From Cyanophora paradoxa CCMP329 (lineage: Eukaryota > Plantae > Glaucophyta): 50,643 nucleotides of DNA. Below, in pieces: positions 1 through 46,576 of this stretch. Where the stretch lies: positions 1-50,643 of the forward strand of contig QPMI01000041.1 of NCBI GenBank assembly GCA_004431415.1, in the 5' to 3' direction. Numbering within the stretch: position 1 is the first letter of the stretch; the number at the start of each line of letters is the position of its first letter. The notes under the pieces are model-generated. The model was not told where the DNA came from. It worked only from the letters and a program-made list of their open reading frames with translations, and searched no databases. Made by a program: the position numbers and the translations under genes.

Positions 1-3000
1 GGAGGCGGGGCTGCGGCTGCCGACGCGGCCCACCCGCCGTGGCTCAGGCGCTCGCCTTCGCACTCGCGCGCGGCGTCTACTCCGTCGCCAGGTCCGCGTA
101 CCCCTCCCCAGCCCCGCCTTCGCCTCGCTTGAGCTTCCGACGCCTTCCGCGCAGGTGTTCCTGGAGCGAAAGGTCGACACGAACCCGCGTACCTCTCTGA
201 CGAGGAGCGCGCGGGCCCCACATCCGAGCGCGCCCCGGGCCCCTCCCCACTTTTAGATGAGATTCTGAGATTCTGCGGGGCAGGGCGAGACGCTCCTGCA
301 CAATCCTGATGGGCCGGCGCGAGCACGGCGAGTCCGCGGAGGACTTCGACGCCTGCCTCCGGTGCGCGCCCCGCCGGCCGGCCGCTCGCTGGCCTGGCCT
401 GCCCGGGCCTTGGGCGACGTCGACCGGCGGCTGCGCCTGCAGGCTCATCCTCGACAACGGGGCGGACGTCAACGAGTACTGCGAGGGCTCCTCCCGTGCG
501 CACGCGCGCGCGCCCGCCTCACGCCTCTGCGCGGCTTGAGCACGCCGCCGCCTCCGCAGCGCTGCACCTTGCGGCGGGCAACGCGGAGGCGGGGGCCGAG
601 ACCGTCCGGTGCGCCCTTCCCTTGCGTCGCGCCCGTCGGTTCTTCTGCGTGATCCGCCCCTCACGCCCCTCTCGCAGCTTCCTGATCGAGCGGGCGCGGC
701 GCTGGAGGCGGAAGGACGCGGAGAATGACGAGGAGGGAGGGGCCGCGCCGCGGCCGGGGCGAGGCCCGCGGGCGGACGCCGCTGCTCGTCGCGTCGCCGT
801 CGCCGCGAGCAAGGGCGAGGATGGCCTCGAGACGGTCCGGGCGCTGCTCGACGCCGGCGCCGACATCGCGCGCGCGACGCGGAGGGCCGGAGCGCCGCGG
901 CGATCGCGGCGGCGGCCGCCGACCTCGAGCTGCTGCGGCTGCTGATGGGCCGCGGGGCCGGGCGCCACGCGCACGAGGGCGAGATCGTCGCGCCGCCTGC
1001 GGCTCGGGCGGCGGCGGGCGGTACCGCCGCGGCCCCGAGACCCGCGACATCCTCGGGTGGGGCTCCTCTTCCCCCGTCCCTCCCGTGCCCCCTGAAACCC
1101 TTCCCCAGGGTCCTGCTGGAGGACGAGCTGAAGGAGGTCTCGGCGGAGGGCTTCGCCTGGCCCGCCGTCCGCCGCGACGCCGACGGCAGCCTCTCCGGCC
1201 GCGCCAAAGGGTCCCGCCTTCAACCCCAGCCCCTCGGCCCGCCCCTCTGAAGCTCGGGGCGGGCAGGTACTCGACGGCGCTGGGGAGGCGATGCGGGACG
1301 GGTCCGAGATGGCGGCCGAGGACGCCCGCCAGTGGGCCGACCTCCTCCTCTGCTGCCCGCGGCCCGATACGCTCAGGCGAGCGCGCAGGAAAGCTAGAGG
1401 GTGCCGCTGGCTGACGGCGCCGCAGCGAGATCACGCGCTGAAGCCGGAGGAGACGGGCGGGGACGCGCGGGGCCGCTGGTGGCGGCGGCGGCGCGCGTGC
1501 TGCGGCTCGAGGGCCGCGTCGAGCCCGAGCCGCCCGAGGACCCAAGAAGACGAAGAAGAAAGCGAAGTGCGCCTTAGATTTGGTTCCTGTCATTGCCGGC
1601 GTGTGCTGAGCGGCCCCGTGCCGGCGGGCGGGGCTGCAGGGCAGAGGAGAGGAGGAGGAGGCGGAGCGCGAGGACCCCGCGGAGGCGGACGCGCGGGACC
1701 GGGAGACGCCGCTGCACGCCGCCTGCGCGTCGGCTCCGCCTCACCGCCCTCCGCCTCGCCGCCGCCGCCACCCGGAGACCGTCGAGTGCGAGATTTAGGT
1801 TGCTTAGGCTAGTCTAACTAACTGAACCTCTCGCCCAACTTGGCCCGCACTGAGCCTCTCTCGCAGCGCTTATCTTAACTGAGCTTAAGCTTCGCCTTAA
1901 CTAACTTAGACCAGCCTAACTAGCTGAGGCTAGGCTAACTGGACTGGACCTAGGCTAGGCTTAGATTTGTTTGACTTTGCCTCGCTGGGCCCCCCGCGCA
2001 GCGCGGCGGACGCGGCGGAGGAGACGGCGCTCTCGCGGGCCGTCGCCTTCGGGCCCGCCCTCTTCGACGTCTGCGCACTCCTCCTCCAGAAGGGCCGCCC
2101 GCTCTTGAGATTATTTGATATCGCCTTTCTTTCGCTGGATCTGAGCGCCTCCGCTGCTGCTGCTGCGCAGGGGCGGACATCGGGCGGCAGGTCGGCGGGG
2201 CCGACGGCGGAAGCAGCGGTGCGTTACGGCTAGGAACAAGCCCAAGAATTCCCTCCTCAACGGCTCCGGCAGGCTGTGCTGGACGGGACGCGGGACGCGG
2301 CGTACCGCGCGCAGCTGAAGCGCGCCGCCGCCGTCCGCGACGCCTTCATCTCGTGCGTACCCCCCTCTCATTTCCCCTCCCCCCCTCGCTTTTCCTTCTC
2401 TTCCTGAGCCCCCGCCCGCGCTGCACGCACGCAGGTACGGGCACCACCCGCCGGAGGTGGCGCGGTTCACGGCGCAGCTGAGGGACCGCCTCCAGGCCGA
2501 GCAGGTCTCGGTCCGTTGTACCCCCCATTTCTCTCCTGGTCTCTCTAGCTTCGGCTTCCGCTCCGGCCTCACTCCGCCCCGCACGCGCCTCCCACGACCC
2601 TCGCCCACGCAGTGCTGGGTGCGCCTTTGTTTTCATTCCCTCCTCCGCCCTCGTTCCGAGGCTGACGCGCGCTGCCCGCCGCCAGATGGACGAGATGAAG
2701 GCGACGGGTACGCCATTCGATTCGCAGTTGACTTTCACCCCTGACCTCGCTCCGCCCCGCGGCCGGCAGGCATCGAGGCCGGAACGGAGGCGCGCGCCCC
2801 TACGCCTCCGCAACGCCCTCTGAGGCGCCCCTGAAAGCCGCGCGCAGTGGCGGGAGCAGATCGGGGCGGGGATCAAGGCGGCCCGCGCCGTCCTCTTCGT
2901 CGCCTCCAAGGCGGGCGCTGCGCCGCGCCCCCTCCCCGCCTCTTCCGCTTCTGATCGCAGCGCCCTCCTCCCGCAGCACTCGTGCGCGTCGGACTGGTGC

Positions 3001-4650
3001 ATGCTCGAGCTCTCCCGCGCCCGCGGTGCGCCCTCCCTGCGGCCTGGACCTCTTCGTTCTCAGCGCCCCCAGACCTGGGGCGACCGATCTTCCCCGTGTG
3101 GGCCGAGGCGCCCTTCCCCCTCGACGACCGCCCGCCGTGCGCGTGTACCCCTCCCCGCCGCCCCTCCTCACAGTACCCCCCGCAGGGCCTCCTCCGCGGC
3201 TGCCGCATCGTCGACCTCTCGCGGTGCCCCGCCCCGCCCGGCCAATCCAAGCTCCCCGCCTGAGCGCCGCCCCGGTCCGGCGCAGGCCGGCGCTGCTGGA
3301 GGCGGGCTTCCCCGCCTTCCTCGCGGAGGTGCGGGGCGCCTCGAGGCCGCCGCCGCCGCCGACGACGCCGCCGACGCCGACGCCGCCCGGGCCCGCCCCT
3401 CACCCTCACCTTCCCCGCTCTTCCCCTCCTCATTTCTGAGCCGTGCGCAGGCGCTGCTGGCGCGGCCCGAGGCGCGCTGCGACCCCCGGCGGGCCCCCTT
3501 CCTGCTCGCCTGGGCCCTGCCCGAGGACGCCCGCAACGCCGCCTCCCTCCTCTCTGCCCTCGCCTTCCGCGGCGTGCCCTGTTGGCTCCACTGCCCTGTA
3601 CCCACACCCCCGTCCTCCCCCACCCACCCTCGCATCTTCCTCACAGCCGCGCAGGGCGCGGACCCGACGGAGAGGCGGGGCGGACGCTGCGCTGGCGGCG
3701 TGCGCGGCCTTCGTGCCGCTCCTCTCGCCCGCCTCCGCCTCCTCCCCCTCCTCCGCGACCGCCTCCAGGCCCGCCCGCCCTGCGCTCGACCTTTCTGTCG
3801 CCTCACTGTGCCCCCGCTTCGCAGCGCGCGCGGGCGGCGGGGCGCCCGTCCGGCCCCTCCTCCTCTCCAGCCTCCAGGCGAGCGCGCCCCCGCCCGCCCC
3901 GTCTGAAGCTTAGGCCGCCCCGCCGGACAGGTGCCGGCGTCGCTCGAGTACTCGCTGGCGCGAACGCGCAAGTTCCCTTCTTCGCCGAAGAGCCCGAGGG
4001 CTTCTTCCCGGTGCCGTACCCCGCCTTCCTCCTCCCCCCCCCCCCCCTTCATCTTCTTCCGACCTCGCCGGCAGTCCCTCGACGCGCTGCTCTCGTCCCT
4101 GGGGCACCGGCCCCCGCCGCCCCGGTCCGCCCGCCCCGCCCCGCCCGGCCCTCCCTACAAGCCTCTCGCCCTGCAGCTGACGCCCCGCCGCGGCGCAGGC
4201 GAAGCCAGAGGGTCCGCCCGCGCTGCACGCCCCCGCCACGTCGGCTGGAGGCGCCGCCCCGTCGGCCCTGGACGCGGTGCGCCCACAGGCGCCGCCCGCC
4301 GCGCGCAGGGCTCACGCGGCGCAGGCGCGGGCGGGGTGCTGCAGGCGGAGATCGCCGGCAGCGACCGCGAGCTCGAGCAGGCGCGCGCCCCCCCCGCCGG
4401 CCCCGCCGCGGGGCCCCGCCCCCTCTCCCTAAGCGAGAGAGATCGCGCGCAGCTGGAGCGGGAGATCGCGGAGCTGGAGGCGGCCGCCGCCCGCGGCTCG
4501 CGGCGGGGGAAGAGGGGCAAGGGCTCGAGTTCGAAGGCCGCCCCGCCGCCCCTGCCGGCGCCCCCGCCCCTGGACCCCCCCGGGGCCGCCCCGGCCGCCC
4601 CGCCCCGCAAGAGGGACCACGGCAAGAGCGGCGCCTGCTCCCTGATGTGA
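1..4650 (+). CDS. Intron-rich ankyrin-repeat / TIR / TIR-like / coiled-coil / CaaX protein, copy 1 (5' end outside window)
   Basis: Manual splicing gives ankyrin repeats (…DACLR|LILDNGADVN…LHLAAGNAEAGAETVR|FLIERG…GRTPLLVA…ETVRALLDAGADI…) and an in-frame TIR domain. The gene ends …RRGKRGK…KRDHGKSGACSLM, TGA 4648-4650. A few exons outside the TIR need 1-bp homopolymer corrections. Confidence 0.85.
2339..3101 (+). other. TIR domain (TIR_2-like) spread over 8 exons, copy 1
   Basis: Exons …-2352, 2435-2510, 2613-2618, 2686-2707, 2770-2789, 2848-2910, 2977-3025 and 3073-… join with no frame correction to DAFISYGHHPPEVARFTAQLRDRLQAEQVSCWMDEMKATGIEAGTEWREQIGAGIKAARAVLFVASKHSCASDWCMLELSRARDLGRPIFPVW. 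This matches the TIR consensus FISY…W.D…I..G..W…I…S…S.WC..EL..A…I.PV. Glu codon at 3007-3009. Confidence 0.92.
3451..3990 (+). other. Second, degenerate TIR-like domain
   Basis: PFLLAWALPEDARNAASLLSALAFRGVPC … DAALAACAAFVPLLSPASASSP … VPASLEYSL follows the TIR strand/helix pattern but lacks WCxxE. It needs frame corrections in C-runs. Confidence 0.5.
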
Positions 4651-6564
4651 GGGCTCGCGCGCGGTCGGACCCGCCGCGGGTTCTACTGTTATACGATTTA
4701 TTGTAATTACGGATACGTATTGCACACGTACGAATTATATTCACGCTTCAAATTAAATGGGGCTCTGGTGGCCGCGCCGTACCCATATCCCCGGCCAGTC
4801 CCTCGGCTTGCAGTGCCTCTGGCGGCAGTGCCCGCTCCGGCGGTGCCCCTTCGCGGCCGGCCACTCTGTCTCTCCTGTACCCGCCATCCGCCGCCCCCGC
4901 GCCCCGGCGCATGCCCAGCCCCGCATGCGCAGCCGTCTGACCCGTCGTGGAGTCGCACGCCGACGCCGCCGGCGTTAGTGCACGCCTCGACCGACGAGGC
5001 GGCCCAGGCATGCGCACCTCCAGAACATGAAATGCGCCAGTCCTTTCATATGCATAGTGACGTCTTCGCTCCCACACGCACACTTTCATTTCTTTCCTTT
5101 CCCGGTTGAAAAGGCAAATCAACGAAAAATCAACGGCCTTTGTTGAACAATTACATAAATATCGTTCGATGATCGTTTTGATTGCTCTCCCCTCACCGAT
5201 GGGGCTGCATCTGGAGCCGCCGGACGCATTCGCTCCTCCAAATTGCTGATGTCATATGTGCATGTATATCCGTCGACGTCGACGTCGACGCTCTTGGGTA
5301 GAGTTGCCGTCCGGGCATGCGCACCAGCTGCAGCTTCACTTTTGCAGCTGCGGCGCCGGCGACGAAGGACGTATACGATAACACCAGCTACAATGGCAAG
5401 AACACCGACGCCACCAGCTACGCCGCCAGCGATGACTGGTAAAGAAACTGATCCGGATGACGGTCACGGATGAAGTACTGGCACTAGAACTCGCATCGTT
5501 GCCTGCAATGGTCTCCTGTACACCTGCTTTGTTCAATCAATTCAGCGATGCATATGATTCGAATTTCGTGCGCGAGCCGATCAAATGCAATTGAAATGAA
5601 TATTGCTCACTTTCGAACAGGAGAGCGGTTTGTTCTAGACTCTTGATTTCCCATGGGAGCTCGGCCGCTAGAACAAGAATGCCGGTCGTTTCCATACTCT
5701 TCAAAAGTTTCGCCGCTTCGGTTGGTCGCAGTGCTACGCTTCGGTAAGGTTGCGAATGGTGCTGCGTAACAAACAATTGCAATTGCGAAGTCCGAAGCTT
5801 ACCAGATGTGCTTCCCAGGCCAGGGCTGTGAAGCAGGGAGAATGTCACTGCAGTTGGAAAGATTTCGATGGCGGCTTTCGCAGTTCGATGCCGATTCCTC
5901 GAGCTTCTTGAGCTTGCCTCCATCCTAGTGACCATCACTTTGACATGTACAGAGCTGGTACCGTAGTCGAGTGCGATGGCCTTCTCAAGACCGGCAGTGA
6001 AGGTCGAAGTTTTCGCTTGGTCCCATGCCGCGAAATCGATGTCGAGAACCGCCGTCATGCTTACCCCTCGAACGCGTTTGCCTGTCCCTGGGTCCTTTTC
6101 AAGTTCGAGGCTGGACTCGGCTGTCCTCTGGATGAAGACGGTGAAGACAAAAGAGGCACTGTCCGTCGCCCCGTGGAATCGTCTCGAGCTGTAACCATGA
6201 ATGTTGCTGTCGTGTACTGAGCTGACGCGCATCTGGAGTCGGTGCCGTAGGCAGAAGAGACACGAACAGAAACGACGCCCGTATCCGGAAATATGGACAC
6301 GCTATTGCCTTCAGCACACGGCTCCAAAGACTGCAGTTTCACGACGAAATATCGGATTTTAGCCTTCGATCTTTTTTGTCTTCCGTAGCTCGCAGCGACA
6401 AGCCCGTATACGTAAGTAGCACTGCTGGGCTGAGCAGAGTTCGTGATGACGGCTAGTTGCGAGGATAAGCGAAAGCCTTCGTAGCCGACGCATGCAGGGT
6501 ATGCTCTCAATGGATCCTGACATAGACTCTCACACGTAAATGCGGGACAATCCTCTGGTAGACA

Positions 6565-8327
6565 CAAGCAGGGGGGCAAGCCCCCCCGCACCCCCCCATT
6601 AACTGATGATCGATATCATGACCGTCGGACATAGCTTTAGCGATCGCACGCGAATTCGAAAGAAACTTACACGCAGAAATGAATTTTTTCGCGATCTGGA
6701 ATTCGAAGCATGTATACGTAGACCTAGATCTGCAGCTGAACTTCAATCCAATCGAGAAACGCGCAGCGTTGACCGTCGGACGTCAGCGCCATACGCGTCG
6801 CGTCGGCCGCGCCGACCTCGATCTAGACTCTCAGATCTTGAGCTTCGGAAGCGGAGCTATAAGATCTAGCGATAGATCGGAACTGTCCCAATTAGCTATT
6901 ATATATTTCGAATCTTGCGCAGTTTGCCAGAACGACCGTCGGACGGACGTTGTCAGGACAAAAGAATTCGAATAATCTTCGCGGCCGCCGGGCACTTCAC
7001 GATCCGGAGCGGGTGCTTATAAGCAGCGGCTTCGACAAAATCAGGATCACTGCTTTCGCGATCGCAATCGCTGCGTTGACTTCGAATTCACCTGCTGATG
7101 CGCCGCAGTGCTCCGTCTGCACAAGCATGCGCAGCAGCGCTAGCTACATGCGCAGCAGCACTAGTATGTACGTGGTTGCTAATATAAGCGCAACTGCAGC
7201 AACGACAGCTGCTGCTGCTGCTCATGAATCATGATCAGCGGGCCTGCAGCTAGACGTCGACTGCAGTGTGTTTCGGTTACTTTCCGTTACTTTTCGCTAT
7301 CCGCCACTTAAGCTGTCCGTTACTTTCCGGAAACGTCCGTTATAATTATCCCGGGCCCGCCACTTTCCGTTACTTCCGTTATCTGCCACTTTCCATGCAC
7401 GCCACTGGCCAGCTTAAACTGCTGGGAAAAACTCGACTCACGCGACAGTCGCGCGGCTCGCGCCACGCCGTGACGTCGACGGCGCCGCGTGGCGGCAGCC
7501 ACGGCCAGCGCGCGCCGCAGGCCCGCAGCGCGCCGCTAGCGCTAGCGCTGCGCGCGCGGCGCTACCGGTACCCGCGGTGACACACTGTGACACGTCAACC
7601 TGAGTGAAGGAAAATCCGGTACGTCCGATCGGATCGAACTGGTAGTAGTAGTCTGGTACTGGCGAAGGCCGAGGGTACCGGATCGTCGATCGGATCGATT
7701 CGATTTTAATTTGTTTTATAGAAGTTGCCCGACAGCTCACTGAAAGAGTCCTAGTCAAAGTCGACGTCGCGGCCCGGGCTCGCGATTGCGACGTCGCGAT
7801 CGGCTCAATCATTTGAATTTGCGAGCACGTGCACGTAGCGTAGTACTACGATCGCGTCCGCAGTTGACTCCGCACGCACTGCGGCATTTGGCGCGCACTA
7901 CGACTGCGAATCCATGTGGCATGCATTAAATTTCTTTAAAACCCAATTAAACTGGAACCGGTTTTCGATCGATCGATTTCGATCCGCGCGCGGCTGGGCA
8001 AAATTAAAATTGCGGTTTTTAAATTAAATTAACGTGCTGACATTTTGAGTTTAGTTTCACTTGGGGTAATGTGTCTGGCGTTATCGCAGCAGATTTTCGA
8101 GAATAAGCGCGGTACCTAACTGTAAATCTGAAGTCAAAATTTAATTTGTGATTCTGATGTAATTTACGTTATGCCACACTGTGTTCTCATATGCGTTGAC
8201 ACAACCCTAAGGTAAGTTTTCTGACCTCAATCAAACTACCGAGGATTTTTGGCTCGGCCGTCCCGTGAAGACTGAGTTTTTTTACGGGTGTCCGCATGCG
8301 TCATAAGTAATAAGTTATAACTTAGTA
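6565..8327 (-). mobile_element. Non-autonomous rolling-circle (Helitron/HUH-type) insertion, 1763 bp
   Basis: The empty site in the duplicate reads ggtagaca|ttcctttcg (about 41392-41408). The insert sits between A and T with no TSD. On the - strand it runs TACTAAG…GCGGGGGGG-CTTG-CCCCCCTGC-TTG (3' GC hairpin, CTTG end). A 14-bp palindrome TAAGTTATAACTTA (8311-8324) marks the other end. No transposase ORF. Confidence 0.75.
7264..7587. mobile_element. Possible nested hAT-like MITE remnant
   Basis: 8-bp inverted ends CAGTGTGT/ACACACTG and clustered TCCGTTA(C) subterminal-type repeats at 7275-7390. No 8-bp TSD. Confidence 0.3.
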
Positions 8328-9135
8328 TTCCTTTCGAATTCTTCCCAGCAAGCACTCGCAGAAGCCTGTGCGAATGTTTTAACTGGGCTCTTGGGAGGCA
8401 TGCGAGATTTAGATCTGTGCTTGCGCACCTGCAGTACCACGAGGAATGAGCTCGGTGCCTGTCTGTTGTCGAATCGTCCCAGATACAGGCTCCGAGGTCG
8501 CGCAAGCATCAGTTCCATTCCAGCACCATTTCTGCGAGCGTTTGCATCCACCGAGCCCGATTGGTCTCGCTATAGCTGTAGGCGTGTGCGCAGGTGAAGG
8601 GCCCGGGGTAGCAATGGGGCGAAGTGTGATTGCTGGGGGTGAAGGCGACACAACATGATCTGTTGGTGAAGGGCGAGCGGTTGGCGAAGGAATTGCTGTC
8701 GGCGATGCGGTCGGAAACGGCGATGCAGCGGTTGTCGGTGAAGGGGAAGGTGAAGGTGAAGGAGTAGCTGTAGGAAACACTGTGCATGTGGGCAAAGGAG
8801 ATCTAACGATAGCCGAAACTGCGATCGCAGATTTACATAATTATTATAAGGCTGTACATGTGATCATCATGAATCCAATTTAAACACCTTCGCCTTTGAA
8901 TCTGTATTGCGCTGAGAACCCTTTGCCCGGGTCCACGCCGTATGTATAAAAAACCACGAGGAGTGCGCTAGACGTCTGAGAAGTGACAAAAGACGTCCTG
9001 CTCAAGGACGCCATTTGCCCGTTCAGTCTCGCTAGAGCTGCGTCTGGCAAGTAGTAACTTCTCACATACTGATAGGGGCATGTCACTGCCGCGCCATCGT
9101 ACAACTGCGTAGCACTCGGATCAGAAATGCTAACG

Positions 9136-9605
9136 AGATAGGTGACCGTCATCAATATCGCGCGCGCCAACGCCGCCAGCTCTTGCGCATGCTGCACCGA
9201 CTGGCTCGCCGCCGGCGCCACATGTACAGCTGCCCGCCGGCCGGCCGCCCCTGCAGCTGTACGTGCGTCAGATGCGGATTCGATATCGATATCGATCTTA
9301 GCTTTCACGCGCTTCAAATTCCAGCGGCATGCGCACGTGCACGCGCACGAATACAAGTCGCATCTACATCAAGCGGGAACGCGTACGCGTCCTGATCATG
9401 ATCATGATGCGCGCTCCACGCGCAAGCCCGGCCCGCATATATTCCTGGTCCTCAGGGCCTGCCGGGCCCCAGGCGTGAGCGCGAGCTCGAGCGCGAGTCG
9501 ATCGCGGTGGTTCTTGCATGCGCAATTATAACTAATTAGTCGGGCAGACAGCGCTAGCGGTCACGAGTCACGACCAGCAGCGCACCTCTGCCACCTCTTC
9601 ATAAC
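9136..9605 (+). repeat. Segment duplicated at 50172-50643
   Basis: Near-identical sequence starting AGATAGGTGACCGTCATCAATATCG and running to the window end in the second copy. Confidence 0.92.
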
Positions 9606-9764
9606 GAGACTCGTCCCCGGGCCCGATCGCGAGGATTCATTCCGTACTTGTACTCCTGCCGCATGCGCAGTGCTGCTCCGCCGGGCCGGCCGGACTCGGG
9701 GTGGACCCGGACTCCCGGAGTCGCGGTGGGCGCAAGCGCCGCCCGCCGCGCGCCTGTCCGAAAG

Positions 9765-10110
9765 GGCTCACAAGGGGCCGTTGTCCGGCGCAGGCGCGGG
9801 CGGGGGCGCTGCAGGCGGAGATCGCCGGCAGCGACCGCGAGCTCGAGCAGGCGCGCGCGCGCGCCCGCCGGCCCCGCCGCGGGCCCCCGCCCCTCTTCCT
9901 GAGCGAGAGAGATCGCGCGCAGCTGGAGCGGGAGATTGCGGAGCTGGAGGCGGCCGCCGCCCGCGGCTCGCGGCGGGGGAAGAGGGGCAAGGGCTCGAGG
10001 GCCGTCCCGCCGCCCCTGCCGGCGCCCCCGCCCTGGACCCCCCGGGGCCGCCCCGCCGCCCCGCCCCGCAAGAGGACCACGGCAAGAGCGGCGCCTGCTC
10101 CCTCATGTGA
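9765..10110 (+). pseudogene. Orphan 3' fragment of the ANK-TIR gene (coiled coil + CaaX exons)
   Basis: Homologous to about 4310-4650: ALQAEIAGSDRELEQ…LEREIAELEAAAARGSRRGKRGK…GKSGACSLM*. Confidence 0.85.
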
Positions 10111-10489
10111 GGCGCTGTTACAGGATTTACTAAAATATTTGGTGGCGTGGGGGGCGGCCGGGGGCGGCCATAAGAAAAATTAATTGAAAAATGCACAAGG
10201 CCCTAAGAACCGCCGGCCGTGTTTTGGGGCGGCCATAAGAAGAATCAATTGAGAAATGCATAAGAGAAATGAGTTGAGAAATGCGGGCTTTTTGGCGCGT
10301 GCGGGAAGCTACAGAATTCCGGGTCTCGGGAGAGGGGCGCCGGCGGGCGCTGCCTCGGGCCCTCTGCCGGGCCAGCCCTGCTGCCAAGATCTATAGCTAG
10401 AACGCCCGGCGGGCCCTCTGAGCCCGGTCCGCCAGGCCGAGCCCTGCAGCTGTGCGGCCCCGGGCCAGCCCTGCAGCTGTGCGGCCCGG

Positions 10490-10771
10490 TGTCGGATGGG
10501 AAGATTCCCACCCGATTAGGCACCCGCGCAGTACTGCGCGGGGCCGGCTCCCTGTGCTGGAGCAGCTGTAGATGCAGGCTGGTGTATTCACTGTGTACCC
10601 GGAAGACTACTGACTCTGTACCCCTAAGACAGGTAGAGGCAGGCCAGCGTAGGCTACCGAGAGGTAAGCCTACAGGAAGAGAGACTATGCTAAGCCACTC
10701 AGGTTACGTCAGGCACCAACTAGCTCTAGTCACTAAGTCACCGCAAGGCCGGGGAATCGAGCCAGGCGACA
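10490..10771 (-). repeat. 3' LTR
   Basis: TGTCGGATGG…GCCAGGCGACA, identical to 22446-22727 except one G/A. Contains a perfect 20-bp palindrome CCCGCGCAGTACTGCGCGGG (10523-10542). Confidence 0.95.
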
Positions 10772-10782
10772 ACTCCTCTTCC
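10772..10782 (-). other. Polypurine tract (PPT)
   Basis: GGAAGAGGAGT on the - strand directly abutting the LTR. Confidence 0.8.
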
Positions 10783-11719
10783 GCTGACGTCGCGTCCGCG
10801 CGACGTAGCCAGTCAAACCGTGACTCTCGTCGGCATAACCGCAAGAGGGCGTCCCCAACACCGCCGATGGGTGCACCGCTCGAGGGCACCGACAGGCCCC
10901 AAGACGAGGAACCTGAGCCACAGCCCGAGGACAGGAATGCAAACAGCTGCAGGCCAGGTAGAAGGCCAGGTAGCTGTAGATCGATCCCGTCCAGGTCGTC
11001 CAGGTCGTATGCAAGGCATGGCAGGTGGGGCAAATGCGTGCATGCGGGAAAGCTCGAAAGGGAAAAGCATAAAAACTCGAAAGGTGTAAACGCTGGCCCA
11101 AACTCACTCCAAACGGCGAGGGCCGCTGGAGAGTGGCACGGATGGGAAGTTTCACCGCCTCGGGAAGAAACCAACGAGGAGGTATTCGGGCCGCCCATCA
11201 GGCCCAACGAAAGGATAGGGCACGACTGAGTGCACCCCCAGCCAGCAACCTCGAGCCCCTCACGGACCCGCAGGCACCCGGAGGCCTACACCCAGCCACT
11301 CTCCACGAGCGACGGGCCAGATCCCAGAAAATGGAACGAAAGGCCCAGATGACGCCCCGTGATCGGCCACCAGCCAACCCACGTCCCATCTCGAAAGCCA
11401 AGGTTGAGGCAAAGCTGGCAAAGAAATCTGCCGTCGACTCTCATCTCATCTCTAGCGTCGCCCTCGGCGTCCCACACAGGAACCCTCGGCGCCGACGTAT
11501 GGGGCAAGGTATAGATTTGGTTCGGGACGTTTGGTTGGGAGTAGGGTCCGCTGAGGCTCGTAGGAGGTCCGTTTCGCACGTCATGAAGACGGGATTTGCG
11601 ACTGCACATGCAGGCTTCCGATCCACAGCCAGCTGCAGCGTGCAGCTGCGTCGAGCGGAGTAGTTGAATCCGAACTCAGACGGCATTGGCGCAGCTGATG
11701 TGGATTCATGAAGCGTGCA

Positions 11720-14700
11720 GTCGACGTCGATGTGAGCGGCGACCTTGTATGCACTTGCACGTGCGTCTCGAGCTCGAGCTCGCGACCAGGTGCACGCGAT
11801 AAAGGTACGAGCCCTTGAGCCGCACATCATCGAAGAGCAGAAATGCTTCGACGATCCCGTGACTGCTTTGGCGCTCCTGTCGAGGTCGCGCAGCTTGCAG
11901 TGCAGGGTCCAATCCGCGCGGCCCCCGGTTCTGACCGCTGGGACCACAGGGTGCACAGCTCAGCAGCTGCACCCTCGTGGTTGGATCACGAGGCCGACGT
12001 GCGAGTTGCCGAGCTCAACGCCTCAGCTGATCGCGGGCGAGCGGCCCCTCGCGACTGTCGGTGGGAGCGTGCAAGGTTGGAGCTCGTGAAGCATACGCCA
12101 GGCTGTCAAGCACGCGCTACGGCGTGATCATGAGGGCTGCAGTGTACGCGTGTACGTAGAGCCGCGGCGCGGGATTCCCTGGAGGAGGTCCGGGTCCCTT
12201 GGCGGACGTACATCAGTGTACGCTGGCACTGGCGCTGTGTGTGGCCTGGGGCGAGAGATGGGGCGAGGACCCGAGACCGAGCCCTCACGTTCGCGACGTG
12301 CGTGACATCGCAGCGCTCAGCTGCTGGCGATGAAGCCAGGTGTCGACGCTCCAGCTAGACGCGGCCTTCAATCGAAGGCGCGCGTGCTGGCCGCGAATCC
12401 CATCAGTCGTTCCCTCGGCCTGGTCTTCCTGGGATCCGGCCGCAGCCAGGCTCGTTGGCAAGCTTGGCGGGTCATGATCACGGGAAGGGGTTCTGCAGCA
12501 ATCCGCGAGACTGCATATTCGCGGTGCCGAGACCCTCGGATTTGCGACCGATTCGCCAGCCTTCGCCGTGGGCTCGTTTCGATCGCATCCCAATACCAGG
12601 CGATCAGGCGAAGCTGACGGACGGCGAATCCTTCAGAGACTCAGATCTCTTGATCGGGGATCCGAATTCGTGTTCGGTGCGTAGCCAGACCGCGACACGG
12701 CGTGCAGTCGGCTGCTGAGATCCGATTCCGATCCTTAGGAGGCCGCATCGGTGAGTAGTGCGAGCGAGTGCACTGGCCGTAGCTGGACTCTCAAGCTCTG
12801 TCGAAACAGCACTTGCCAGTCCGTTCCGGACACGGTCACTGGCTGTGCACGTAACAACAGGGCCTGAGGGCCATCAGCCCCAGTAGCATCGCCACCGATG
12901 GGTTTCCGAGGCGGAATGTGGTTCGCCAACGGCGAGACCTGGATCCCGGCGAGCCGCCGTGTGAGGAGACCTCAAGGCGGTTAGCTAGGTTCGATTGCTT
13001 GTGCTCGATCAGCCTGCAGACGGCAGCGCGCGCTGGGGCGAACTGCTCCACAGCAGATCTAGGCGCGACGTCGACTACATGCTCGAGTCTGATCATGGTC
13101 CCGACTCCTCTTCCGCTGAAGAGGGGAAGTCGGGGCGTGGCAGGCATCCGCCGATCGAGGAGGGGCTCAGGCGTCGGGCCAAGAGGCAGCCTTCGGCTCG
13201 AGCGCTTGTGCGCGTACTCCTCTTCCGCTGAAGAGCGGAAGCCGTAGCACGGCAAACTGCCTCCGATGCCACTCCCTCTTCGGTTAAGCACCGTCCCCGG
13301 TGCTCCACCGTCTTTCGCGAAAATTGTGGCACGCTGATCATGAGGCCGCTGGGATCCGTGATTGGATCGGGACAGCGTGGCCGTGGTGGAGAAATTCGCG
13401 AGTGCGGGTAGAAAGAACGGCGAGGCGTGATCGTGCACGACCGTAACCGTCTCTCTTTCGTTGGATTCCATGGCGTTCCGGGCCGCTGCCACTCTCGATT
13501 CGAGGGGCGAGCGTGAGCCGCGGGGCCAGAGCGAGGTTGAATGGATGCTGGCTTCGATTTGAATTGAGTTGTGGGCAACTGATCAATTGCGTCGGCCGGC
13601 CACGATTGTGCCGATCGCGAGTCAATCGCACTGCAGTGCCCGCCGTTCGAATTTCGCGATTCGATCGGACGCCAGTCGTGTCGAGCACGAGGGCATCGAG
13701 CCTCGACTTTCGAGCGGGCGTCGATCAGCGCAAGGCTTGGGCCGAGCTTCCGAAACACGATTTGCATATATAGCGCTCGGCTGTGTATGCTCGTGTCCGT
13801 AGGCCCGTGTTGCCGCTTTTTGCGGTTTTAGGCCAGGCGTTGGGGCGCCAGCACCCAGATTTATGGGAGCGGCCTCAGTGAATGAAGCTGGTGACGGTGG
13901 GTGCGCCACTGCCGGGAATAAGATCCCGGGTCGCCGGCGCCCAGCGCGAAACGGATTTGGCAGCTATGTCGAACTCGTTCGCTCGCAGGAGCGCCAGCTG
14001 CATATGCATGCAGCCGGGCCCGCGCGACTTGGTATACGTATGCGCGAACGTCCGGTGGTCCGGGTTGCGGGGCAGAATTTGAGAAAATCCGTGCCGCTGC
14101 TCGGGACGAGAGCCCGGCCGGCGGGTCGCCAGCGAAAATCGACGACTTTCGCCATGCTGGGCCCTCGCGAAATTTCGCGAGCCGAGAGGTACGAAATCGG
14201 CCGTGCCACGGTGCGTGCGCGGTCCGACGGTCTGGCCTTCTCGAGCGGGCCGCGTACGCGTAGCCTACATCTCGGTTCCGAGCCGCGCGCGGCGTCGGGG
14301 CGGAATCGCGAGATCGAGGTCAACCGTCGGACTCGGGTGAGTCTCGAGAGCCGTGACCGCTTTAGTAAGCGTCAGAACCAGGCTCAGCGGCTGGTCTGAG
14401 GCTGAGGATGATGCATATGCTTGGCCGAAGGGCCGTGCAAGGGCCGGTCTACTGGGCCGGGCATGGCCACGCACACGTGGGCGCGAAATTAAATTGCCGC
14501 ACTCTAGTGCTGCAAAATTTTCGTGGCGACGCGAAGTGATTCGCATGCACAGATCTAGAGGGCCCGGGAAACGTCCGGCGCGATGATTGTGCACGCGGGC
14601 GCCCTCACGCCGTGACGTCCGCTGGCGTGCGCCGTGACGGCCTCGCCACCGCGGCAGCCGGCCACGGGCGTGCACTGCGGCCGCCGGGCACAAGTGCGTG

Positions 14701-17700
14701 TGCAGGGCGCGGCTGCGCATGCCGTGGTATTGATGGCTGGGCGCCAGCCGCCGTACGCGTGGCAGCTTTAGCAGCACCATAGGGATCGGCAGGCGGGCTT
14801 GCAACCAACGCGATGGGTTCCCAGCTGCAGGAGCGGGACCGGTAGCGGCCGGTTGCAGGAGCCGTGCTCGTGCATACGAGTGTCAATATCGTGCCGACGA
14901 TGTCATGCACGATCGCAGGCTTTCTCTTAGAAGACCGGGGGGGCCCCGGTGCTCTCGAGAGAGCTGACGATAGAGCTTTCGCTCTGTCTCTAGCTCTCGG
15001 TGGCCGTGGCGGGTACCCGGTGCGCTGGAGTGTGAAGCCGACAGCTGCAGGTTCCACCAGCTAGGCGGGAACGGCTTTCCGAAAATCGGATACCGTGGCT
15101 TGCGCACGGGCCAGCCACTTGGGGCGCGCTGCCGCGCGGATCATCAGATCCGGCTCATCATTGAATTCCGAATTCGAATCGCGAATTCGAATTGCGAATT
15201 CGAATTGCGATGCTTTCGAATTTGGGTGCCGCAGTGCGGTCGACAGGTTCGCTTCGCTCGGTAGCGAATTACGATTTCTGCAGCTCATGCAGTCTTCCCT
15301 GCCTCATCCTCTCTCCAACCGTGTTTTAGCGGGAGGTCGAGGCATGAGCGTGCCGCAAGGCGGGTGGGGCTGAAGGCCGCGTGCGCAGGCTTGGCGGCGA
15401 GCGGCCGTGCCGAGGCCTGGAACCTGCCGCCGTGCGGTCGCGTGTAAATTTTGCGGGCCGGTCTGCGAGCCCTGAAGGCTGCGCTACGGTGCGAAAAATG
15501 CCTGCAGCCAGCACCAGCTGCAGCATCGCCGGGTTTGGCGAAGTGGTGCACAGGTTCCGGCTCAGGGCGGCGGCAATGCTCTTTTCGAGCTAGCACTGCC
15601 CTTGGCGGCGCAAATCGCGACCGTACATTCGATAGCTGGATCGGCGCTCTGTAGCACGGCGCTCCATTACAGCGCCTCATCAGCGCTCGCCGAGCGGCGT
15701 GCCGGCGTTGGCAGAGAGAGCCGGGCGCTGTTCAGCGCAGCCGATCGTCCGTTCGCGATCGCGAGTCGACGTCGTTTCGCGAGTCGGTCCGGGGCCACGG
15801 GGCCGTGTGCGCAGCCTCTTTGAGAAAGCTACCGCATAAGTGCTCAGGCTTCGAATTTTTCGCGGCGCTCAGCGCGGCTGCTCGGCGGCTGCATCCGATA
15901 TCCGGTCGCGATATCGATGCATATGCTGTGGGCCTGGCCGGGGCTGAGACCCGCGCCTGCAACACACACGTGCACGTGCACGCGGTTTATGCAAGGTAGG
16001 GCTAGCCGTTTAGTTTTGTTTAACGGTTGCAGCCTTTATTCCCGCTGGCCATGGTGGCTGCGGCTTGAATATTTGTGGCGCTCGCGATCGGTGTCCGCGT
16101 CCGCGGCCACGCGATTGCACGTGCAAAGAGTCGTGCGCGGCTCGACAAGCGGCTCTGGGGCCCGCTGTACGTTGTAGCGCTGGCCCACGCGTGGGAGTCC
16201 GACATTCGATTCCAGTCGCTAGCTTGACGCTCGCAATTGGCCTCGGTCTCCCTGGGACTCGGGAGGACGAGTCGAGCCCGTTGCGAGCTTCGATTCGCGT
16301 TGGGGCCGGGGGCCACAATTCGCGGCCTCGTAGGGGCAAGGCCCTAATTCACAGCTTTGCGACGTCCAGCGACCGAGCGTGATCGTGGATTCGCGACGCG
16401 GATATTCGCGGGGCCTAGGCTCGCCGCGAATCTCGCTGGGCTCGTGGCCGTGCCGGTTTTCGCGGGGCAGGCCGGTGCGGCCCGGTGGGCCGGGGCTGGA
16501 ATCCCGATGCGGGTCGCCGCAGGCGCCGACGAGGAGGCCCTTGGGCGAGGGCCCGCGAGGGGACCTGCCAGGCAAGGGCCGGTGGCCGCCTGAATCTCGA
16601 CTACGCCGAGCTCGAGGCTCGCGATTGCGCGGGCTCGAATATTACGGGCCGTCCTTCCGATATGGGCTGGACGGGCCGGGCACTCGGAATATTCGATCGC
16701 GAATCTTTGAGTCCGGTCCCGATTATCGGATTTTCGCGATATCGATATCGGACGGGCACGGCTTCCGCAGTGCCGGCCCGGCGGTGGGGACAGTCTGGCA
16801 GGAGAGAGCCGGAGCTGCGAGCCCGGGCAACCTCAGACCTCAAAAGGGCCGAGGGCTGCCCGCGATCGCAGCTGCTCCAAATCCGATCGCGAGGCTCGCG
16901 ATAGTCGTTCCTTGCGATCCAAATTCGCAGGCCGGCACCCTGAATCGGGGCAACGATTGCAAATTGACGGATCTCGATTATCGGATTCTCGCGGGTCATC
17001 GGACCCCATATGCATGGCCAGGCACGTGCACGGCAGCCACGGGCGGCCGCGGGCTGGAGCGCGTGCAGCGGGCTCTGGGTTTATATCCGAGCGAGCTAGC
17101 GTAACTTTGATCGTGAGCTCGAGCTCGCCGAGTCGCCTTGGCCGCGGGCCAGATTAGAGGCAGCTTGAGGCGAATTCGAAGCGCAGTGCCCGAGCCCCGA
17201 GGCTCGTTCACTGGCCGGGCTCGGAATTGGCTTAATTGAACCGTTCAACGGTTGGCCACGTGCATCGGGGCGCCAGGCGCATTGGACGCTTCGGCGCGGG
17301 GCGCGGGTGCCGCTGTCAGCTTCGGGCCCTGAGGGCAGGGCCTCCGGGACGCAGCCGCCAGCTGTTCGCAGGCAATTGCAAGCGCCGATCGTAGGCTGAG
17401 CTCGTCCTCTGGATTCGAGGCCAGGGACCGCAGCTATTTGCAGAGGACTTCCAGGGCTCAGGGCCCAGCGGCAAGCCGGCCGTGGACTGCGGGGCCTCGG
17501 GCCGAGGGCGAGGCCGGGCGGCCGTTATTTAACAGGGCCGTACACGCATCGGCTTGAACGTTTACAGGCATTCGCATGACCGTGCAATCTGCACGTGCTC
17601 GTGCACTGTGGCTACGGCACCCACCGGCTGCCGCAGTGCGGTTCGGTTGCGCAGCCAAGTCGCGGAAATATGCCCAGGGCCCGGCCGGGTGCCCGGCGCC

Positions 17701-20050
17701 GGCGGCCTCCGCCTCTGAGAGAGGGCGAGACTCGCGATCGGCGGGCTCGAGGTCGCAAGGCAGGCGGTCGCGACGTCGACGGCGGTCGCAGGCAGGCAAC
17801 GGCCAGGGGAGCGGGCCGTGCCGCACGGTGCCGCGCGCACGGCGCTGTCGTGTACGTGCACGTGATCCGATGATCGGCTTCGTTGGGGATCAGCCACGAT
17901 ATCGATATCGATCTGGATAGACTCATGGTCGTCTCGAGCCAGGGGCTCGGAATCGCGATCCCACGTCCGTGGATCGGGGGCCGGATTGGGATTCAAGCTT
18001 AAGGCCCGCGATTTCGCGATCGGTCGGCGTAGGGCATCGTCGTGACCGGGCGTTGCAGCGCTCCTTGCTCGCAGCGGCGTGAGAGACGCCACTCTCAGGC
18101 CTCTGGGGGCTCGTAGCGGCGCGAGATACAGGGCCGATGTCTGGGGACCGCAGGCCGGTCGTGAGGCACGGCATTTTGCGTGCGGGAACTCGAAGGATCC
18201 CGACGTCGCAGCACGCGAGATCAGCCATGGGTTCGACCCGTGCGCTGTGATAAGCGCCCTTGGTCCGGGCGTGCTGCGCAGCTTCGCAATCGCTCCTCTG
18301 ACCGTGGGGCCGGGGCCCGGCCGGCCGCGGGCCACCTCGAACGGCACTGCGGCAGTTCGGCGATGCAAACGGCAGCTCGGCGGTCGCGATCCTGTCCGCG
18401 AAGGCGAGGGCAACCGCGAGGGCGAGTTGCTGATCGTAATTCGATGGGGCCCGGCGGCCGAGACCGGGACCGGCAGGTGTCGGCGGCCGAGACCGAAACG
18501 CCGTGACGGCATCGAATTTGTGCCTGGCGAGGCTTGGCACTGCCAGTCGCAGGTCTGATCGCAGGCCTGGGGCTCAGCAGCCGCGGAGCCTTGGAAGCTG
18601 GGCAGCTCTGAGCCGTGGTGGACGTGCTCATGCACGTGACTTCCGGCCCTCAACTCGCGGCTGAGCTCAAGCTGTACCCGCTGGCACGTGCACGCGGCGG
18701 CAACGTTAACGGCGGGGGCCGAACTCGCAGTGCCAGCAGGTCCTGATCATGAGAGCCGAAATTGACCCATAACCGGATCCAGGGCTCGGAAGCGAGCTCG
18801 AGCTCGATCGCGAGGCGCCGCGCCGGGCGGGCCGCCGGGCGTTCGAGCTGGCACAGTGGCGGCTTGCGATTGCTCCAAGGCTTAGTCAACCGGGGCCCAG
18901 AGCGTCGACGTCTCGCTCGAACAGCAAGCGTGAGCTTCGGGGTCCGGCCCGGCGGATCCGGATCTCGGCCTGACAGCTTCCAGTCCGGATCGGAGAGTCT
19001 CGGGATCCGGACTTCGGGAGTTGAGAGCTTGCATTGAGCAGGCCAGGCCAGGTGCTGGCTAGAGGTGCGCCGCGCGGCGCCTTCAATCTTGGGCCAGGCC
19101 CGGCTGCGGGGCGGCTTGCGCTTTTCGCGACAGCTGTAGGCAGAGATCTAGAGCCTCAGCAACTCGGGTCCCTCTCGAGCCTGGGGCTCGTGATTACGGT
19201 TCGCGCCGGTGCTCGCAGCTCGAATCCGCAGTTCGCATCGCCGCCAGGGCTAGCGCTAGGCTCGAACTCGTAGACCACGGGGCACAGGCTAGGTAGCCAG
19301 GTGAACCTCGAGCTCGGGAGCCACATGGGCCGGCTGTGCGTGGAACGCGCCGCTCTCGGCGGGCCTCAGACGGGCAGAAGTGCAGGCCGGGCCTCGAGAT
19401 CCAGGCCTGGTCGGGGGGCGGCTCGAATTCGAGCATCAAGGCCTCAGGATGCCGACCGGCGCTCTCGAATGCAGCACGCAGTGCTGCGGGAAGATCGTCG
19501 GACAGGCCTAGGCCCTGAGGGGCCGGTTGCGAGGCCCGGCAGCCCTGATCCGAGCTTGAAGCTCGTGCGGGGTAAATTTCCCAATTTCATGCGGGGTAAA
19601 TTTCCCAATTTCGCAGTCAAGGCCCCGAAGGAGCTTGCTGCAGAAATCAAACGCTCAGCCTGGCTCTCGATCGCGACTGCAGTCGAGCAGCCTAGCAGCT
19701 CCGAGGCTTGCAGTCGCAATCGCGATGGGGTTCGCCGGTCATGCGTAGGCCCGGCTGGCCGAGGCCTGGCAGACCCCGGAACTCCGGCTTCTACCCGATG
19801 CGGATCGGGAGTCAGCCGGTCCTCGGGATTGACCGGCGAGCGCCAGTGGCGCGTGTTGTACTCGTCCCCGGGCTGCCACTGGGCCACCTCAGGGCACTGC
19901 GGCAGGGCCCCGGGGCCGCGGGGGAAGATCTCGTCGGGGTGCAGGGCCGTGGCTCGGCGAACCCTCTAGCGCCCCACCAACGAGGTCCAGTCTCCGAGCG
20001 CTTGGGGACTTCCTCGAGCTCGGCAAGCGCGAGGGGAAAGTCGTTGGTGT
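11720..20050 (-). pseudogene. Heavily frameshifted pol remnant (RT, integrase, chromodomain)
   Basis: Motif fragments across frames, in order: FPLALAELEEV…RGFAEP…SSPAAP (about 19900-20040, RT N-terminus); KGAYH and GSFEF…MP…GL…AAT..QR (18100-18261); SHSS…GH…KLYRQLSRE and GLLQP-LPVP-SWEPIAL (14800-15040, integrase zinc finger/core start); LR.CYV…TDW…VHS…HYSP (12740-12870); VHPV (about 11950); IVEAFL..DVRLKGSYLYRVH-W (11790-11855, chromodomain). Confidence 0.7.
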
Positions 20051-22445: not shown

Positions 22446-22727
22446 TGTCGGATGGGAAGATTCCCACCCGATTAGGCACCCGCGCAGTACTGCGCGGGGC
22501 CGGCTCCCTGTGCTGGAGCAGCTGTAGATGCAGGCTGGTGTATTCACTGTGTACCCGGAAGACTACTGACTCTGTACCCCTAAGACAGGTAGAGGCAGGC
22601 CAGCGTAGGCTACCGAGAGGTAAGCCTACAGGAAGAGAGACTATGCTAAGCCACTCAGGTTACGTCAGGCACCAACTAGCTCTAGTCACTAAGTCACCGC
22701 AAGGCCGGGGAATCGAGCCAAGCGACA
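22446..22727 (-). repeat. 5' LTR
   Basis: Direct repeat of 10490-10771, followed by the TSD CCCGG. Confidence 0.95.
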
Positions 22728-22978
22728 CCCGGGCCAGCCCTAAGCCCGGGCCGCCAGGCTGAAGCCCTGCCAGGCTGAGGCTAGCGCTAGGGACCAGCTG
22801 GCCTGCAGCTGTGGGCGGCGCCCCAAGTGATCATGATCATGATTGCGCTCGCGTTAACGTTTTGCGCTCGCGATCGCCCCCCGCGGCCTCAGTTTCGGGC
22901 CTTCCATTTCGCCGCGAAAAGCAGGCGACTCCCGTCCCGGTTTTTTGTATGGGCCAGTTTGCAACTTGATCCGGCCGC

Positions 22979-23024
22979 CGCCATAGTAAAAACCGGGGAC
23001 ATGTCCCGGTTTTTTACTATGGCG
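22979..23024. repeat. Near-perfect 46-bp palindrome within GTCCCGGTTTT repeats (DNA-transposon subterminal-like)
   Basis: CGCCATAGTAAAAACCGGGGACA|TGTCCCGGTTTTTTACTATGGCG; arms differ only in homopolymer lengths. GTCCCGGTTTT occurs 3 times in 22935-23037. Confidence 0.6.
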
Positions 23025-24699: not shown

Positions 24700-25023
24700 C
24701 GCTAGGCGCCTGTACCCCGGTGAGGGCCGTTGCGGGACCGAGGCGGTGTACCCCGCTCGGGGTACTCCGCTCGGGGCCGTCGCGGGGCCGATCGGGGTAC
24801 CCCGCTCGGGGGTACACTTGATCGGGGCCGCTTGGACGCTGTACCCCTCTCCGGGGTACGCGTTCGGCCTCGGGCCGCGCCTTGTGGGGCCGGTTGGGGC
24901 GAACGGCGTACCCCGGGGAGGGGTACGCGGTTTCTTCCGGGTTCGGGGATCCGAAGCCGGGTACCGCCGCCGGAGGCCGCGGGGGTGAGCGTAGCGAACG
25001 CAGCACGAATGCAGTACCCCCTA
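24700..25023. mobile_element. Probable hAT-like transposon end
   Basis: About ten GTACCC/GGGTAC-type motifs in both orientations, ending in CAGTACCCCCTA (TAGGGGGTAC on -). No partner end identified. Confidence 0.4.
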
Positions 25024-25449
25024 CCAAACAAGAGTCAGGTCACAGCCAGCCAGAATAGCATACATAAGAACAAGAGCGATCAAGAGGGCGAGGGTTGCAC
25101 CACCCTCCTCCTGCCCCCCCCCCCCTCTTTTCTCCCCCCCGCCACCTCAACGTGTCTTCGGACGCTGAGCCCCATCCCCAGCGCACTGTGCTGTAGGGGA
25201 ACGGGCAGAGAGCGTGAATTCGGACAACAACATGCCATGATGGGGCCGGGGGGCCAAGAAGCCCGAGGTAACGAGCCGGCACAGAAGGCTGGGGAGGTTC
25301 TCGCCGTGCCCCTATGGGACAGTCGACTAACTGGGGCGGCGCTTGATAGTTGCGCCGCCAGATCCCGCCGCCAACAATTGGCAAGTCATGCTGGGCGGTG
25401 CGGGCCAGGGCGCGCTACGGGTGGGGGCGGGCAAGGTGGCCGCACGTGC

Positions 25450-39652: not shown

Positions 39653-39887
39653 GTGCCTCTGGCGGCAGTGCCCGCTCCGGCGGTGCCCCCTTCGCGGCCG
39701 GCCACTCTGTCTCTCCTGTACCCGCCATCCCGCCGCCCCGCGCCCCGGCGCATGCCCCAGCCCCGCATGCGCAGCCGTCTGACCCGTCGTGGAGTCGCAC
39801 GCCGACGCCGCCGGCGTTAGTGCACGCCTCGACCGACGAGGCGGCCCAGGCATGCGCACCTCCAGAACATGAAATGCGCCAGTCCTT

Positions 39888-46416: not shown

Positions 46417-46576
46417 CAGTAGCCCAAATGGCCAACTTAAGCGTGCAACTTCAAGGCTTGCAAGCCTTGAAGTTGCAAGTTGCAACTTGCAACTCTAGCC
46501 TAGTAGATTTTAAAACTTGAAGTGCATTTTTCAAGTTTTAAGACTTGCAACTTGCAAGTGGCATTTTGGCGGACTA
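46417..46576. mobile_element. Possible MITE with ACTTGCAA repeats and a perfect 34-bp palindrome
   Basis: Imperfect inverted ends CAGTAGCCCAAATGGCCAACTT / AAGTGGCATTTTGGCGGACTA. TGCAACTTCAAGGCTTG|CAAGCCTTGAAGTTGCA at 46444-46477. Confidence 0.45.

Follow-up and report, generated by a model that had tools for sequence, protein, structure and literature searches.

The sequence analysed here (the window) is a stretch of 50,643 nucleotides, positions 1 to 50,643 of the forward strand of contig QPMI01000041.1, from the glaucophyte Cyanophora paradoxa CCMP329. Its first 4650 nucleotides hold the 3′ half of a gene (copy A) that encodes ankyrin repeats followed by a Glu-bearing TIR domain (TIR1), a degenerate TIR-like domain (TIR2), a short heptad segment, a basic patch and a CaaX motif at the C-terminus (Table 1). 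The gene belongs to a family represented in the Cyanophora genome by at least ten long models, along with five or six fragments, and its layout, proposed in a first-pass annotation from the letters of the window, is borne out by the family models, by the domains of the public model P0006 (tig00021178_g19210, 1752 residues) and by assembled contigs that resemble spliced RNA. The many ankyrin repeats placed upstream of the TIR domain are indeed in the gene, but only the last of them fall within the window, the gene start lying ~2.5 kb of mRNA further upstream. Nor is the gene hidden, as had been supposed, since near-identical models are already present in EukProt.

Alignment to P0006 covers residues 850–1752 across window positions 39–4650, with 839 of 870 residues identical (96%; local protein-to-DNA alignment). 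Copy A is divided by ~28 short introns (median 62 nt), comprising 17 GT-AG, 10 GC-AG and one with a donor one base off. The eight core exons of TIR1 (2273–3136) join in frame with no frameshift and encode SDWCMLEL at 2989–3012, exactly as first read; they include a 6-nt micro-exon (2613–2618, encoding Cys-Trp) in TIR strand B, which is skipped in the public models P0001, P0007 and P0011. Two further exons complete the domain, and to join 3136 to 3186 one must assume that a single base is missing or that the donor is an unusual GC. Queries for the searches were single exons or stretches of the window that are naturally in frame, together with the public models P0002, P0005 and P0006. The in-frame stretch 2848–3024 matched two EukProt models of Cyanophora paradoxa, one of which is copy B of the window (tig00000171_g10958), and was also the only single-exon query to match Pfam (TIR_2, E 0.02). 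Models P0003 and P0004 were rejected as family members, being low-complexity, Cys-rich false matches.

The gene is real, spliced and transcribed. Two sequencing runs, each from a different study and assumed to be RNA, show no coverage at intronic sites that the DNA runs cover deeply, and the GC-AG joint 2910/2977 is present in these RNA-like runs and not in the DNA runs. RNA-like contig X19 rec 13 links the ankyrin exons between window positions 1 and 1785 and has 271 nt between 93 and 692, where P0006 predicts 270, including exons that copy B has lost. A second contig, X17 rec 9, reaches 2871 nt upstream of 692, which is exactly 957 codons and leads to the start of the 1752-residue form, while a third (3285–4553) begins at the end of TIR1, continues across TIR2 as far as the basic patch and marks 3390–3450 as an intron that P0006 wrongly retains. 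The first-pass annotation had called for RNA evidence that the ankyrin, TIR and CaaX exons share one transcript; spliced joints were recovered, but none of the RNA-like contigs listed runs from ankyrin to CaaX, and because of this, and because near-identical copies are indistinguishable, a single mRNA is inferred rather than shown. Selection on the exon model is indicated by the comparison of copies A and B, in which exons are less divergent than introns (30 of 1928 sites, 1.6%, versus 72 of 1330, 5.4%; p 1e-9). Only 4 of 912 sites differ in the TIR exons (0.4%), three of them silently.

Outside TIR1, copy A contains ~20 single-base frameshifts, mostly at homopolymer runs, and many of these are not present in copy B. 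The window assembly is an unpolished long-read assembly of GC-rich, intron-dense sequence, and the short-read contigs of two DNA runs add back or delete single letters at many of its sites. As these contigs restore the frame at the breaks listed (1281, 1356, 1468, 3974 and 4332), the frameshifts look like long-read assembly errors; no in-frame stop codon occurs in copy A. The same frameshifts could mean that the family is real while copy A is a decaying duplicate, or a redundant and error-ridden assembly copy of the tig00021178 and tig00021116 loci: all three neighbouring copies (B, C and D) are truncated, a matching set of a full, a fragmentary and a 3′-deleted model (P0005, P0017 and P0007, respectively) is found on tig00021116, and the RNA-like contigs are not assignable among near-identical copies. 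This explanation is very unlikely given the restored frame and lack of stops, the presence in X19 rec 13 of the exons deleted from copy B at the length expected of 90 codons (271 nt), and the exact agreement of the upstream length of X17 rec 9 with the 1752-residue start.

Domains, C-terminus and family

The profile and structure checks proposed by the first-pass annotation gave TIR_2 and ankyrin matches on P0006 and a TIR fold for the TIR2 model. Pfam assigns to P0006 10–11 ankyrin stretches and two TIR_2 stretches (TIR_2 E 5e-21). TIR1 is a complete domain that passes the TIR_2 cut-off of 28 bits with 65.9 bits on P0006:1310–1460 and contains FISY, an acidic residue after strand B and W-x-x-x-E. 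In the PDB, it best matches by sequence the NADase AbTIR and bacterial TIRs related to it (E 1e-4 to 2e-4); FIS, W-x-D, W and the catalytic-type Glu align with these at ~25–30% identity. The Glu is invariant across nine family members, and the full catalytic motif is unchanged in all members retrieved.

TIR2 scores below the Pfam cut-off (20.7 bits), yet profile–profile comparison (HH) finds it homologous to TIR1 (94%) and to a bacterial TIR profile (97.5%, E 5e-12), with Arg at the position of the catalytic Glu. Its AlphaFold2 model (predicted template-modelling score, pTM, 0.69) has TIR or ThsB proteins as its top eight VIA-align matches (Z 11.3–12.4), among them RRS1 (best, tied with other TIRs), Hydra TRR-2, MyD88, Cat1 and SARM1 (Z 11.7–12.4 for these five). 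The two-domain TIR1–TIR2 model was confounded in Foldseek by other two-domain alpha/beta proteins, whereas the single-domain search was clear. The view that the downstream region is a degenerate TIR is thus upheld, and the Arg-for-Glu replacement supports its assignment as a putatively catalytically dead TIR.

The best fold match of TIR2 recalls the paired plant receptors, and copy A could be the executor half of a two-gene receptor that needs a head-to-head neighbour with a Glu-less TIR1, as RPS4 needs RRS1. We consider this unlikely: no head-to-head partner gene is found on either strand of the window, the 5′ flank of copy A and any neighbour there lying beyond it, and a TIR1 lacking the Glu was seen in none of the 15 models retrieved.

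Pfam detects no NB-ARC, NACHT, LRR, ARM or SAM domain in P0006, and no Walker A motif or STAND P-loop NTPase was found in six family proteins (Pfam and motif check), in line with the first-pass claim that a STAND NTPase is lacking. There is also no LRR or Ig ectodomain (Pfam) and no convincing transmembrane helix, the maximum 19-residue hydropathy (1.7) lying inside an ankyrin repeat. The Cyanophora ankyrin–TIR protein falls outside the SARM1, NLR and TLR groups. Feature searches of the ESM Atlas returned generic TIR or ankyrin clusters only, and its structure search returned tandem or single TIR proteins with a TM score of ~0.5.

The C-terminal elements noted in the first-pass annotation, RRGKRGK, a second basic stretch (RKRDHGK) and CSLM before the stop codon, are all present in copy A. 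The end reads CSLM here, CALM, CALM and CSVM in paralogues and CSIM in a marine relative (P0023, below), with CaaX-type ends in P0005, P0006, P0008, P0010, P0015 and P0023. The pattern C-[SA]-[LV]-M is retained in four distinct paralogues although the preceding 50 residues diverge, and a similar heptad segment occurs in P0008, P0009, P0010, P0012 and P0015. CaaX motifs are found in 1–2% of proteins (PMC11152559). By the established rules for CaaX motifs with X = Met, the Cys would very probably be modified by farnesyltransferase and the protein held on a membrane. The 15 residues before this Cys have a net charge of 0 to +3.

Among distant paralogues, conservation is highest in TIR1 (70–90% identity) and lowest in the ankyrin array (25–60%), a pattern that fits a conserved effector with variable sensors. 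The lineage expansion of the family, with duplicated and truncated copies in the window, is likewise a pattern common in immune gene families.

Relatives in marine eukaryotes

When metagenome contigs were scanned with a TIR1 profile, the best matches were marine eukaryote-like contigs, some with spliceosomal introns, which encode ankyrin repeats, the same junction helix and TIR start, a Glu-bearing TIR and a second alpha/beta domain. The full-length marine protein P0023 (1280 residues; runs SRR27445056 and SRR27444700), representing a cluster of ten sequences from JGI, ENA and Logan, comprises in order a ribokinase-like PfkB domain, a short ankyrin array, the TIR, the second domain, a basic patch ~40 residues before the C-terminal end and a terminal CSIM. 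Its N-terminal domain matches Pfam PfkB (E 9e-36) and ribokinase structures (E 4e-31), and the kinase catalytic Asp is apparently kept. Contigs L001, L002, L010, L012 and L021 contain at least three further marine versions of the ankyrin–TIR–second-domain layout, of which that of L002 ends without a CaaX; in the marine genomic pieces, the introns are of the GT-AG type and abound in simple repeats. Neither a viral relative of the marine TIR nor a dinoflagellate spliced leader on the marine contigs was found.

Marine and Cyanophora proteins share 31–40% identity over the last ankyrin repeat and TIR1, and 34–40% where the ankyrin–TIR junction is compared. TIR profiles align in register with the marine second domain, which has Met in place of the Glu, but the match is weak (HH E 0.004–0.007; 1 of 60 column shuffles scored as high), and the domain is therefore a probable, not proven, pseudo-TIR. 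In TIR1 trees built from Cyanophora, marine and bacterial TIRs, the Cyanophora and marine groups are separate and each well supported; a joint clade is not recovered in the free tree and not rejected (p-AU 0.19). Because five features occur in matching order, the module as a whole may plausibly share one ancestry, with convergence as the alternative. Protein homologue searches returned only Cyanophora proteins and weak bacterial TIRs, a blank that is not evidence of absence elsewhere because P0023 was missed despite fitting the length range.

The ribokinase-like domain of P0023 raises the possibility that these proteins are active TIR enzymes with a non-immune role, namely membrane-bound metabolic or stress sensors that respond to a sugar, a nucleoside or an NAD-related metabolite by making a cyclic ADP-ribose (cADPR) or ADP-ribose (ADPR) messenger, for example in Ca2+ signalling. 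SARM1 provides a precedent, as it senses nicotinamide mononucleotide (NMN) and NAD+ rather than pathogens. This role appears quite unlikely: the Cyanophora proteins have no ribokinase-like domain, marine homology beyond ankyrin–TIR1 is not proven, and expansion, variable ankyrins and frequent truncated copies fit an arms race better than housekeeping.

Proposed mechanism and known systems

We give about an even chance to the reading that the protein is a farnesylated, repeat-gated, NAD+-cleaving TIR protein of defence or (stress) signalling, with the logic of SARM1, in which a repeat sensor controls an oligomerising TIR, and not that of an NLR. Its prenylated C-terminus would sit on a membrane with the protein on the cytosolic face, and the ankyrin solenoid would keep TIR1 domains apart or inactive until a trigger, protein or metabolite, binds. 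Membrane clustering, aided by the heptad segment, would then let TIR1 domains assemble, and the assembled TIR1 would cleave NAD+ to ADPR or a cyclic isomer. TIR2 might act as a built-in spacer, brake or assembly surface, and the output, either a nucleotide signal or the loss of NAD+, would limit infection. The joint claim that an ankyrin-bound trigger and membrane clustering lead to TIR1 assembly and NAD+ cleavage is slightly more probable than not. TIR NADases require BB-loop-dependent assembly (PMC9153377), and TIR NADase activity has been demonstrated in protists (10.64898/2026.04.20.719644; PMC13142454). TIR genes are induced in virus-infected and resistant algae (PMC12489294), and from this induction together with the expansion of the family, an immune role is moderately probable.

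Several observations weigh against this mechanism. Family genes are apparently expressed in ordinary culture runs, and the ribokinase-like domain of the marine form fits metabolic as well as pathogen sensing. The CaaX is missing from models P0011, P0012 and P0014, some of which may be model errors. The first-pass annotation had paired the CaaX with a polybasic patch as a joint membrane signal, and while both are present, RRGKRGK lies ~40 residues upstream of the CaaX and is missing from P0010 and P0015, unlike the polybasic signal of K-Ras4B, which adjoins its CaaX. The two-domain TIR1–TIR2 model has a pTM of 0.47, and the relative placement of the domains is not fixed. Finally, the TIR1 Glu alone argues weakly for activity because, of 29 TIRs from unicellular eukaryotes that carry the Glu, only 4 produced cyclic ADPR in E. 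coli (2026 preprint, 10.64898/2026.04.20.719644).

The protein may instead be a non-enzymatic, lipid-anchored adaptor or scaffold of the MAL/TIRAP or TRAM kind, whose two TIRs would form polymers with further TIR proteins and whose ankyrins would bring in partners. TIR adaptors anchored to membranes have precedents, and TIR2 has been conserved although apparently dead. That many Glu-bearing TIRs were inactive in the heterologous screen (10.64898/2026.04.20.719644) would also suit an adaptor. Such a role nevertheless seems unlikely, as neither the retrieved members nor the marine relatives show any change in the full catalytic motif of TIR1, and the solved relatives closest in sequence are enzymes.

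The nearest parallel to the proposed NAD+-cleaving protein is SARM1 and its C. elegans counterpart TIR-1, which likewise place a repeat solenoid before a Glu-bearing TIR, lack an NTPase and are membrane-tethered; the SARM1 TIR is among the fold matches. SARM1, however, has ARM repeats, SAM domains and an N-terminal mitochondrial anchor, whereas the Cyanophora protein has ankyrins, no SAM, a second TIR that is probably dead and a C-terminal CaaX, and its TIR sequence is nearer to bacterial TIR_2. Plant TIR-NLRs, including RPS4/RRS1, share the WCxxE motif, the pairing of a putatively active with an inactive TIR and an expanded, rearranged family; the Cyanophora protein differs in having no NB-ARC or LRR and in carrying both TIRs in one chain, at its C-terminus and of the bacterial-like TIR_2 type instead of the plant clade. 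AbTIR and related bacterial TIRs are the best solved-structure sequence matches, with the Glu aligned, but have an N-terminal coiled coil and a single TIR. MAL/TIRAP and TRAM also hold a TIR on the membrane, either by binding lipid or by being lipid-modified; these non-enzymatic adaptors are small, are targeted through the N-terminus and are not known to have an ankyrin array or prenylation.

Ankyrin–TIR proteins have been noted, uncharacterised, in oomycetes (PMC9153377) and choanoflagellates (PMC6040629). Compared by description only, these are likewise cytosolic proteins of microbial eukaryotes in which ankyrins are joined to a TIR, while neither paper mentions a second TIR or a CaaX, and no such protein was among our homologue-search matches. 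Dictyostelium TirA and TirE also place a repeat domain before one or two TIRs: TirE has RCC1 repeats and two diverged tandem TIRs, and TirA is linked to antibacterial function (PMC13142454). These proteins, again compared by description, differ in having an RCC1 propeller in place of ankyrins and no reported CaaX.

We found no paper on an ankyrin–TIR–pseudoTIR–CaaX protein, on a TIR with a CaaX or on a TIR with a ribokinase, most subscription journals lying outside the search. Nor did we find any on Cyanophora TIR proteins. The first-pass view that this is not a described family therefore holds for the full architecture but not for its ankyrin–TIR core (PMC9153377; PMC6040629) or for the proteins as such, which are in EukProt. 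The domain types are all known; it is the combination that is apparently new, in proteins already in a public gene set.

Glaucophytes split off close to the base of the plant lineage, and to our knowledge almost no receptors have been characterised in algal and protist immunity. An expanded family that has a putative repeat sensor and a probable NAD+-cleaving TIR and is free of the NLR switch bears on how TIRs are gated outside NLRs and SARM1. It is also one in which the role of an in-chain dead TIR can be addressed, and the ribokinase-fused marine form suggests ribose or a related sugar or nucleoside as a candidate ligand class. A broader but doubtful proposal is that ankyrin–TIR–pseudoTIR–CaaX constitutes an old or horizontally spread, STAND-free, prenylated TIR enzyme module of microbial eukaryotes. 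If so, its exchangeable front ends would be a long ankyrin array in Cyanophora and, in marine plankton, a ribokinase-like domain that binds a sugar or nucleoside. The module would then represent a third intracellular design of NAD+-based immune receptor beside NLRs and Toll-like receptors, with lipid-anchor clustering replacing the NTPase switch.

Other copies and features of the window

Table 1 Features of copy A, further family copies in the window, and coding stretches of the ribokinase-like-fused marine form. Positions are those of the window unless a contig is named.
Feature	Position	Strand	Basis or detail
Last ankyrin-array exons and non-repeat spacer (P0006 residues ~850–1281)	1–2093	+	P0006 alignment; Pfam Ank; spliced RNA-like contigs X17 rec 9 and X19 rec 13
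Ankyrin-to-TIR junction helix and TIR strand A	2171–2352	+	Exons 2171–2220, 2273–2352; P0006 alignment; junction also aligns to marine relatives
TIR1, ten short exons	2273–3389	+	P0006 alignment; Pfam
TIR1, first five exons	2273–2352, 2435–2510, 2613–2618, 2686–2707, 2770–2789	+	
TIR1, last five exons	2848–2910, 2977–3025, 3073–3136, 3186–3223, 3286–3389	+	
GAG codon of putative catalytic Glu E1397 (P0006 numbering) in WCMLE	3007–3009	+	Aligned with AbTIR Glu
TIR2, degenerate TIR-fold domain	3451–4124	+	Exons 3451–3597, 3655–3768, 3825–3877, 3931–4010, 4075–4124
CGC codon of Arg1578 at TIR2 catalytic-Glu position	3760–3762	+	HH alignment
Short heptad segment, probable coiled coil	4325–4495	+	Exons 4325–4380 and 4453 onward; sequence pattern
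Basic patch RRGKRGK	4501–4521	+	Sequence
CaaX motif CSLM and stop codon	4636–4650	+	Sequence
Copy C, isolated 3′ fragment, heptad exons to CSLM and stop	9722–10112	+	
Copy B, public model tig00000171_g10958 (P0001)	34594–39672	+	Starts at ~residue 465 of P0006 (mid-array)
Copy D, 3′ fragment, TIR2 end to CSLM and stop	48614–50039	+	Matches P0017
P0023, P0025 (marine) coding stretches	L143:1544–5386, L144:505–4347		Ribokinase-like-fused form; also L145, L146

Copy B has an in-frame internal deletion of P0006 residues ~836–952 (~117 residues of the ankyrin region) and is without the last exons, including the CaaX; the deletion joint 4061/4812 is seen in both DNA runs. An exon-shuffled sensor (for the A/B difference at 609–677) and a fusion of copy B to another ankyrin gene were both considered and rejected, the internal in-frame deletion of the same gene explaining the difference. 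Model P0007 of tig00021116, which has the same truncated form, reads after the 4061/4812 deletion into the former 3′ flank and ends in CAAV (window 39652–39783 and 4812–4940), an end that may be chance or a gene-model artefact. A further family model, P0009 (tig00021571_g22378), runs into pyrroline-5-carboxylate reductase and is probably two genes merged by the predictor.

Blocks of 97–99% identity pair 4812–6564 with 39652–41399, 8327–9139 with 41399–42218 and 9136–9605 with 50172–50643, and the region is therefore a rearranged tandem segmental duplication. Given the similar set of full, fragment and 3′-deleted models on tig00021116, part of this duplication may reflect assembly redundancy.

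The intervals 10200–25400 and 40300–48500 are AT-richer, palindrome-rich intergenic DNA, and ten of their longest open reading frames gave no Pfam match. The last exon of copy D contains an insertion of ~375 bp (49451–49824) that resembles a miniature inverted-repeat transposable element, with internal hairpins and 13-nt imperfect terminal inverted repeats (49452–49464 and 49802–49814). Directly upstream of copy B lie a satellite-like tandem array of ~47 copies of a 138–139 bp unit (25553–32170; 77–80% matches) and a second tandem array with a unit of ~166 bp (32920–33615).

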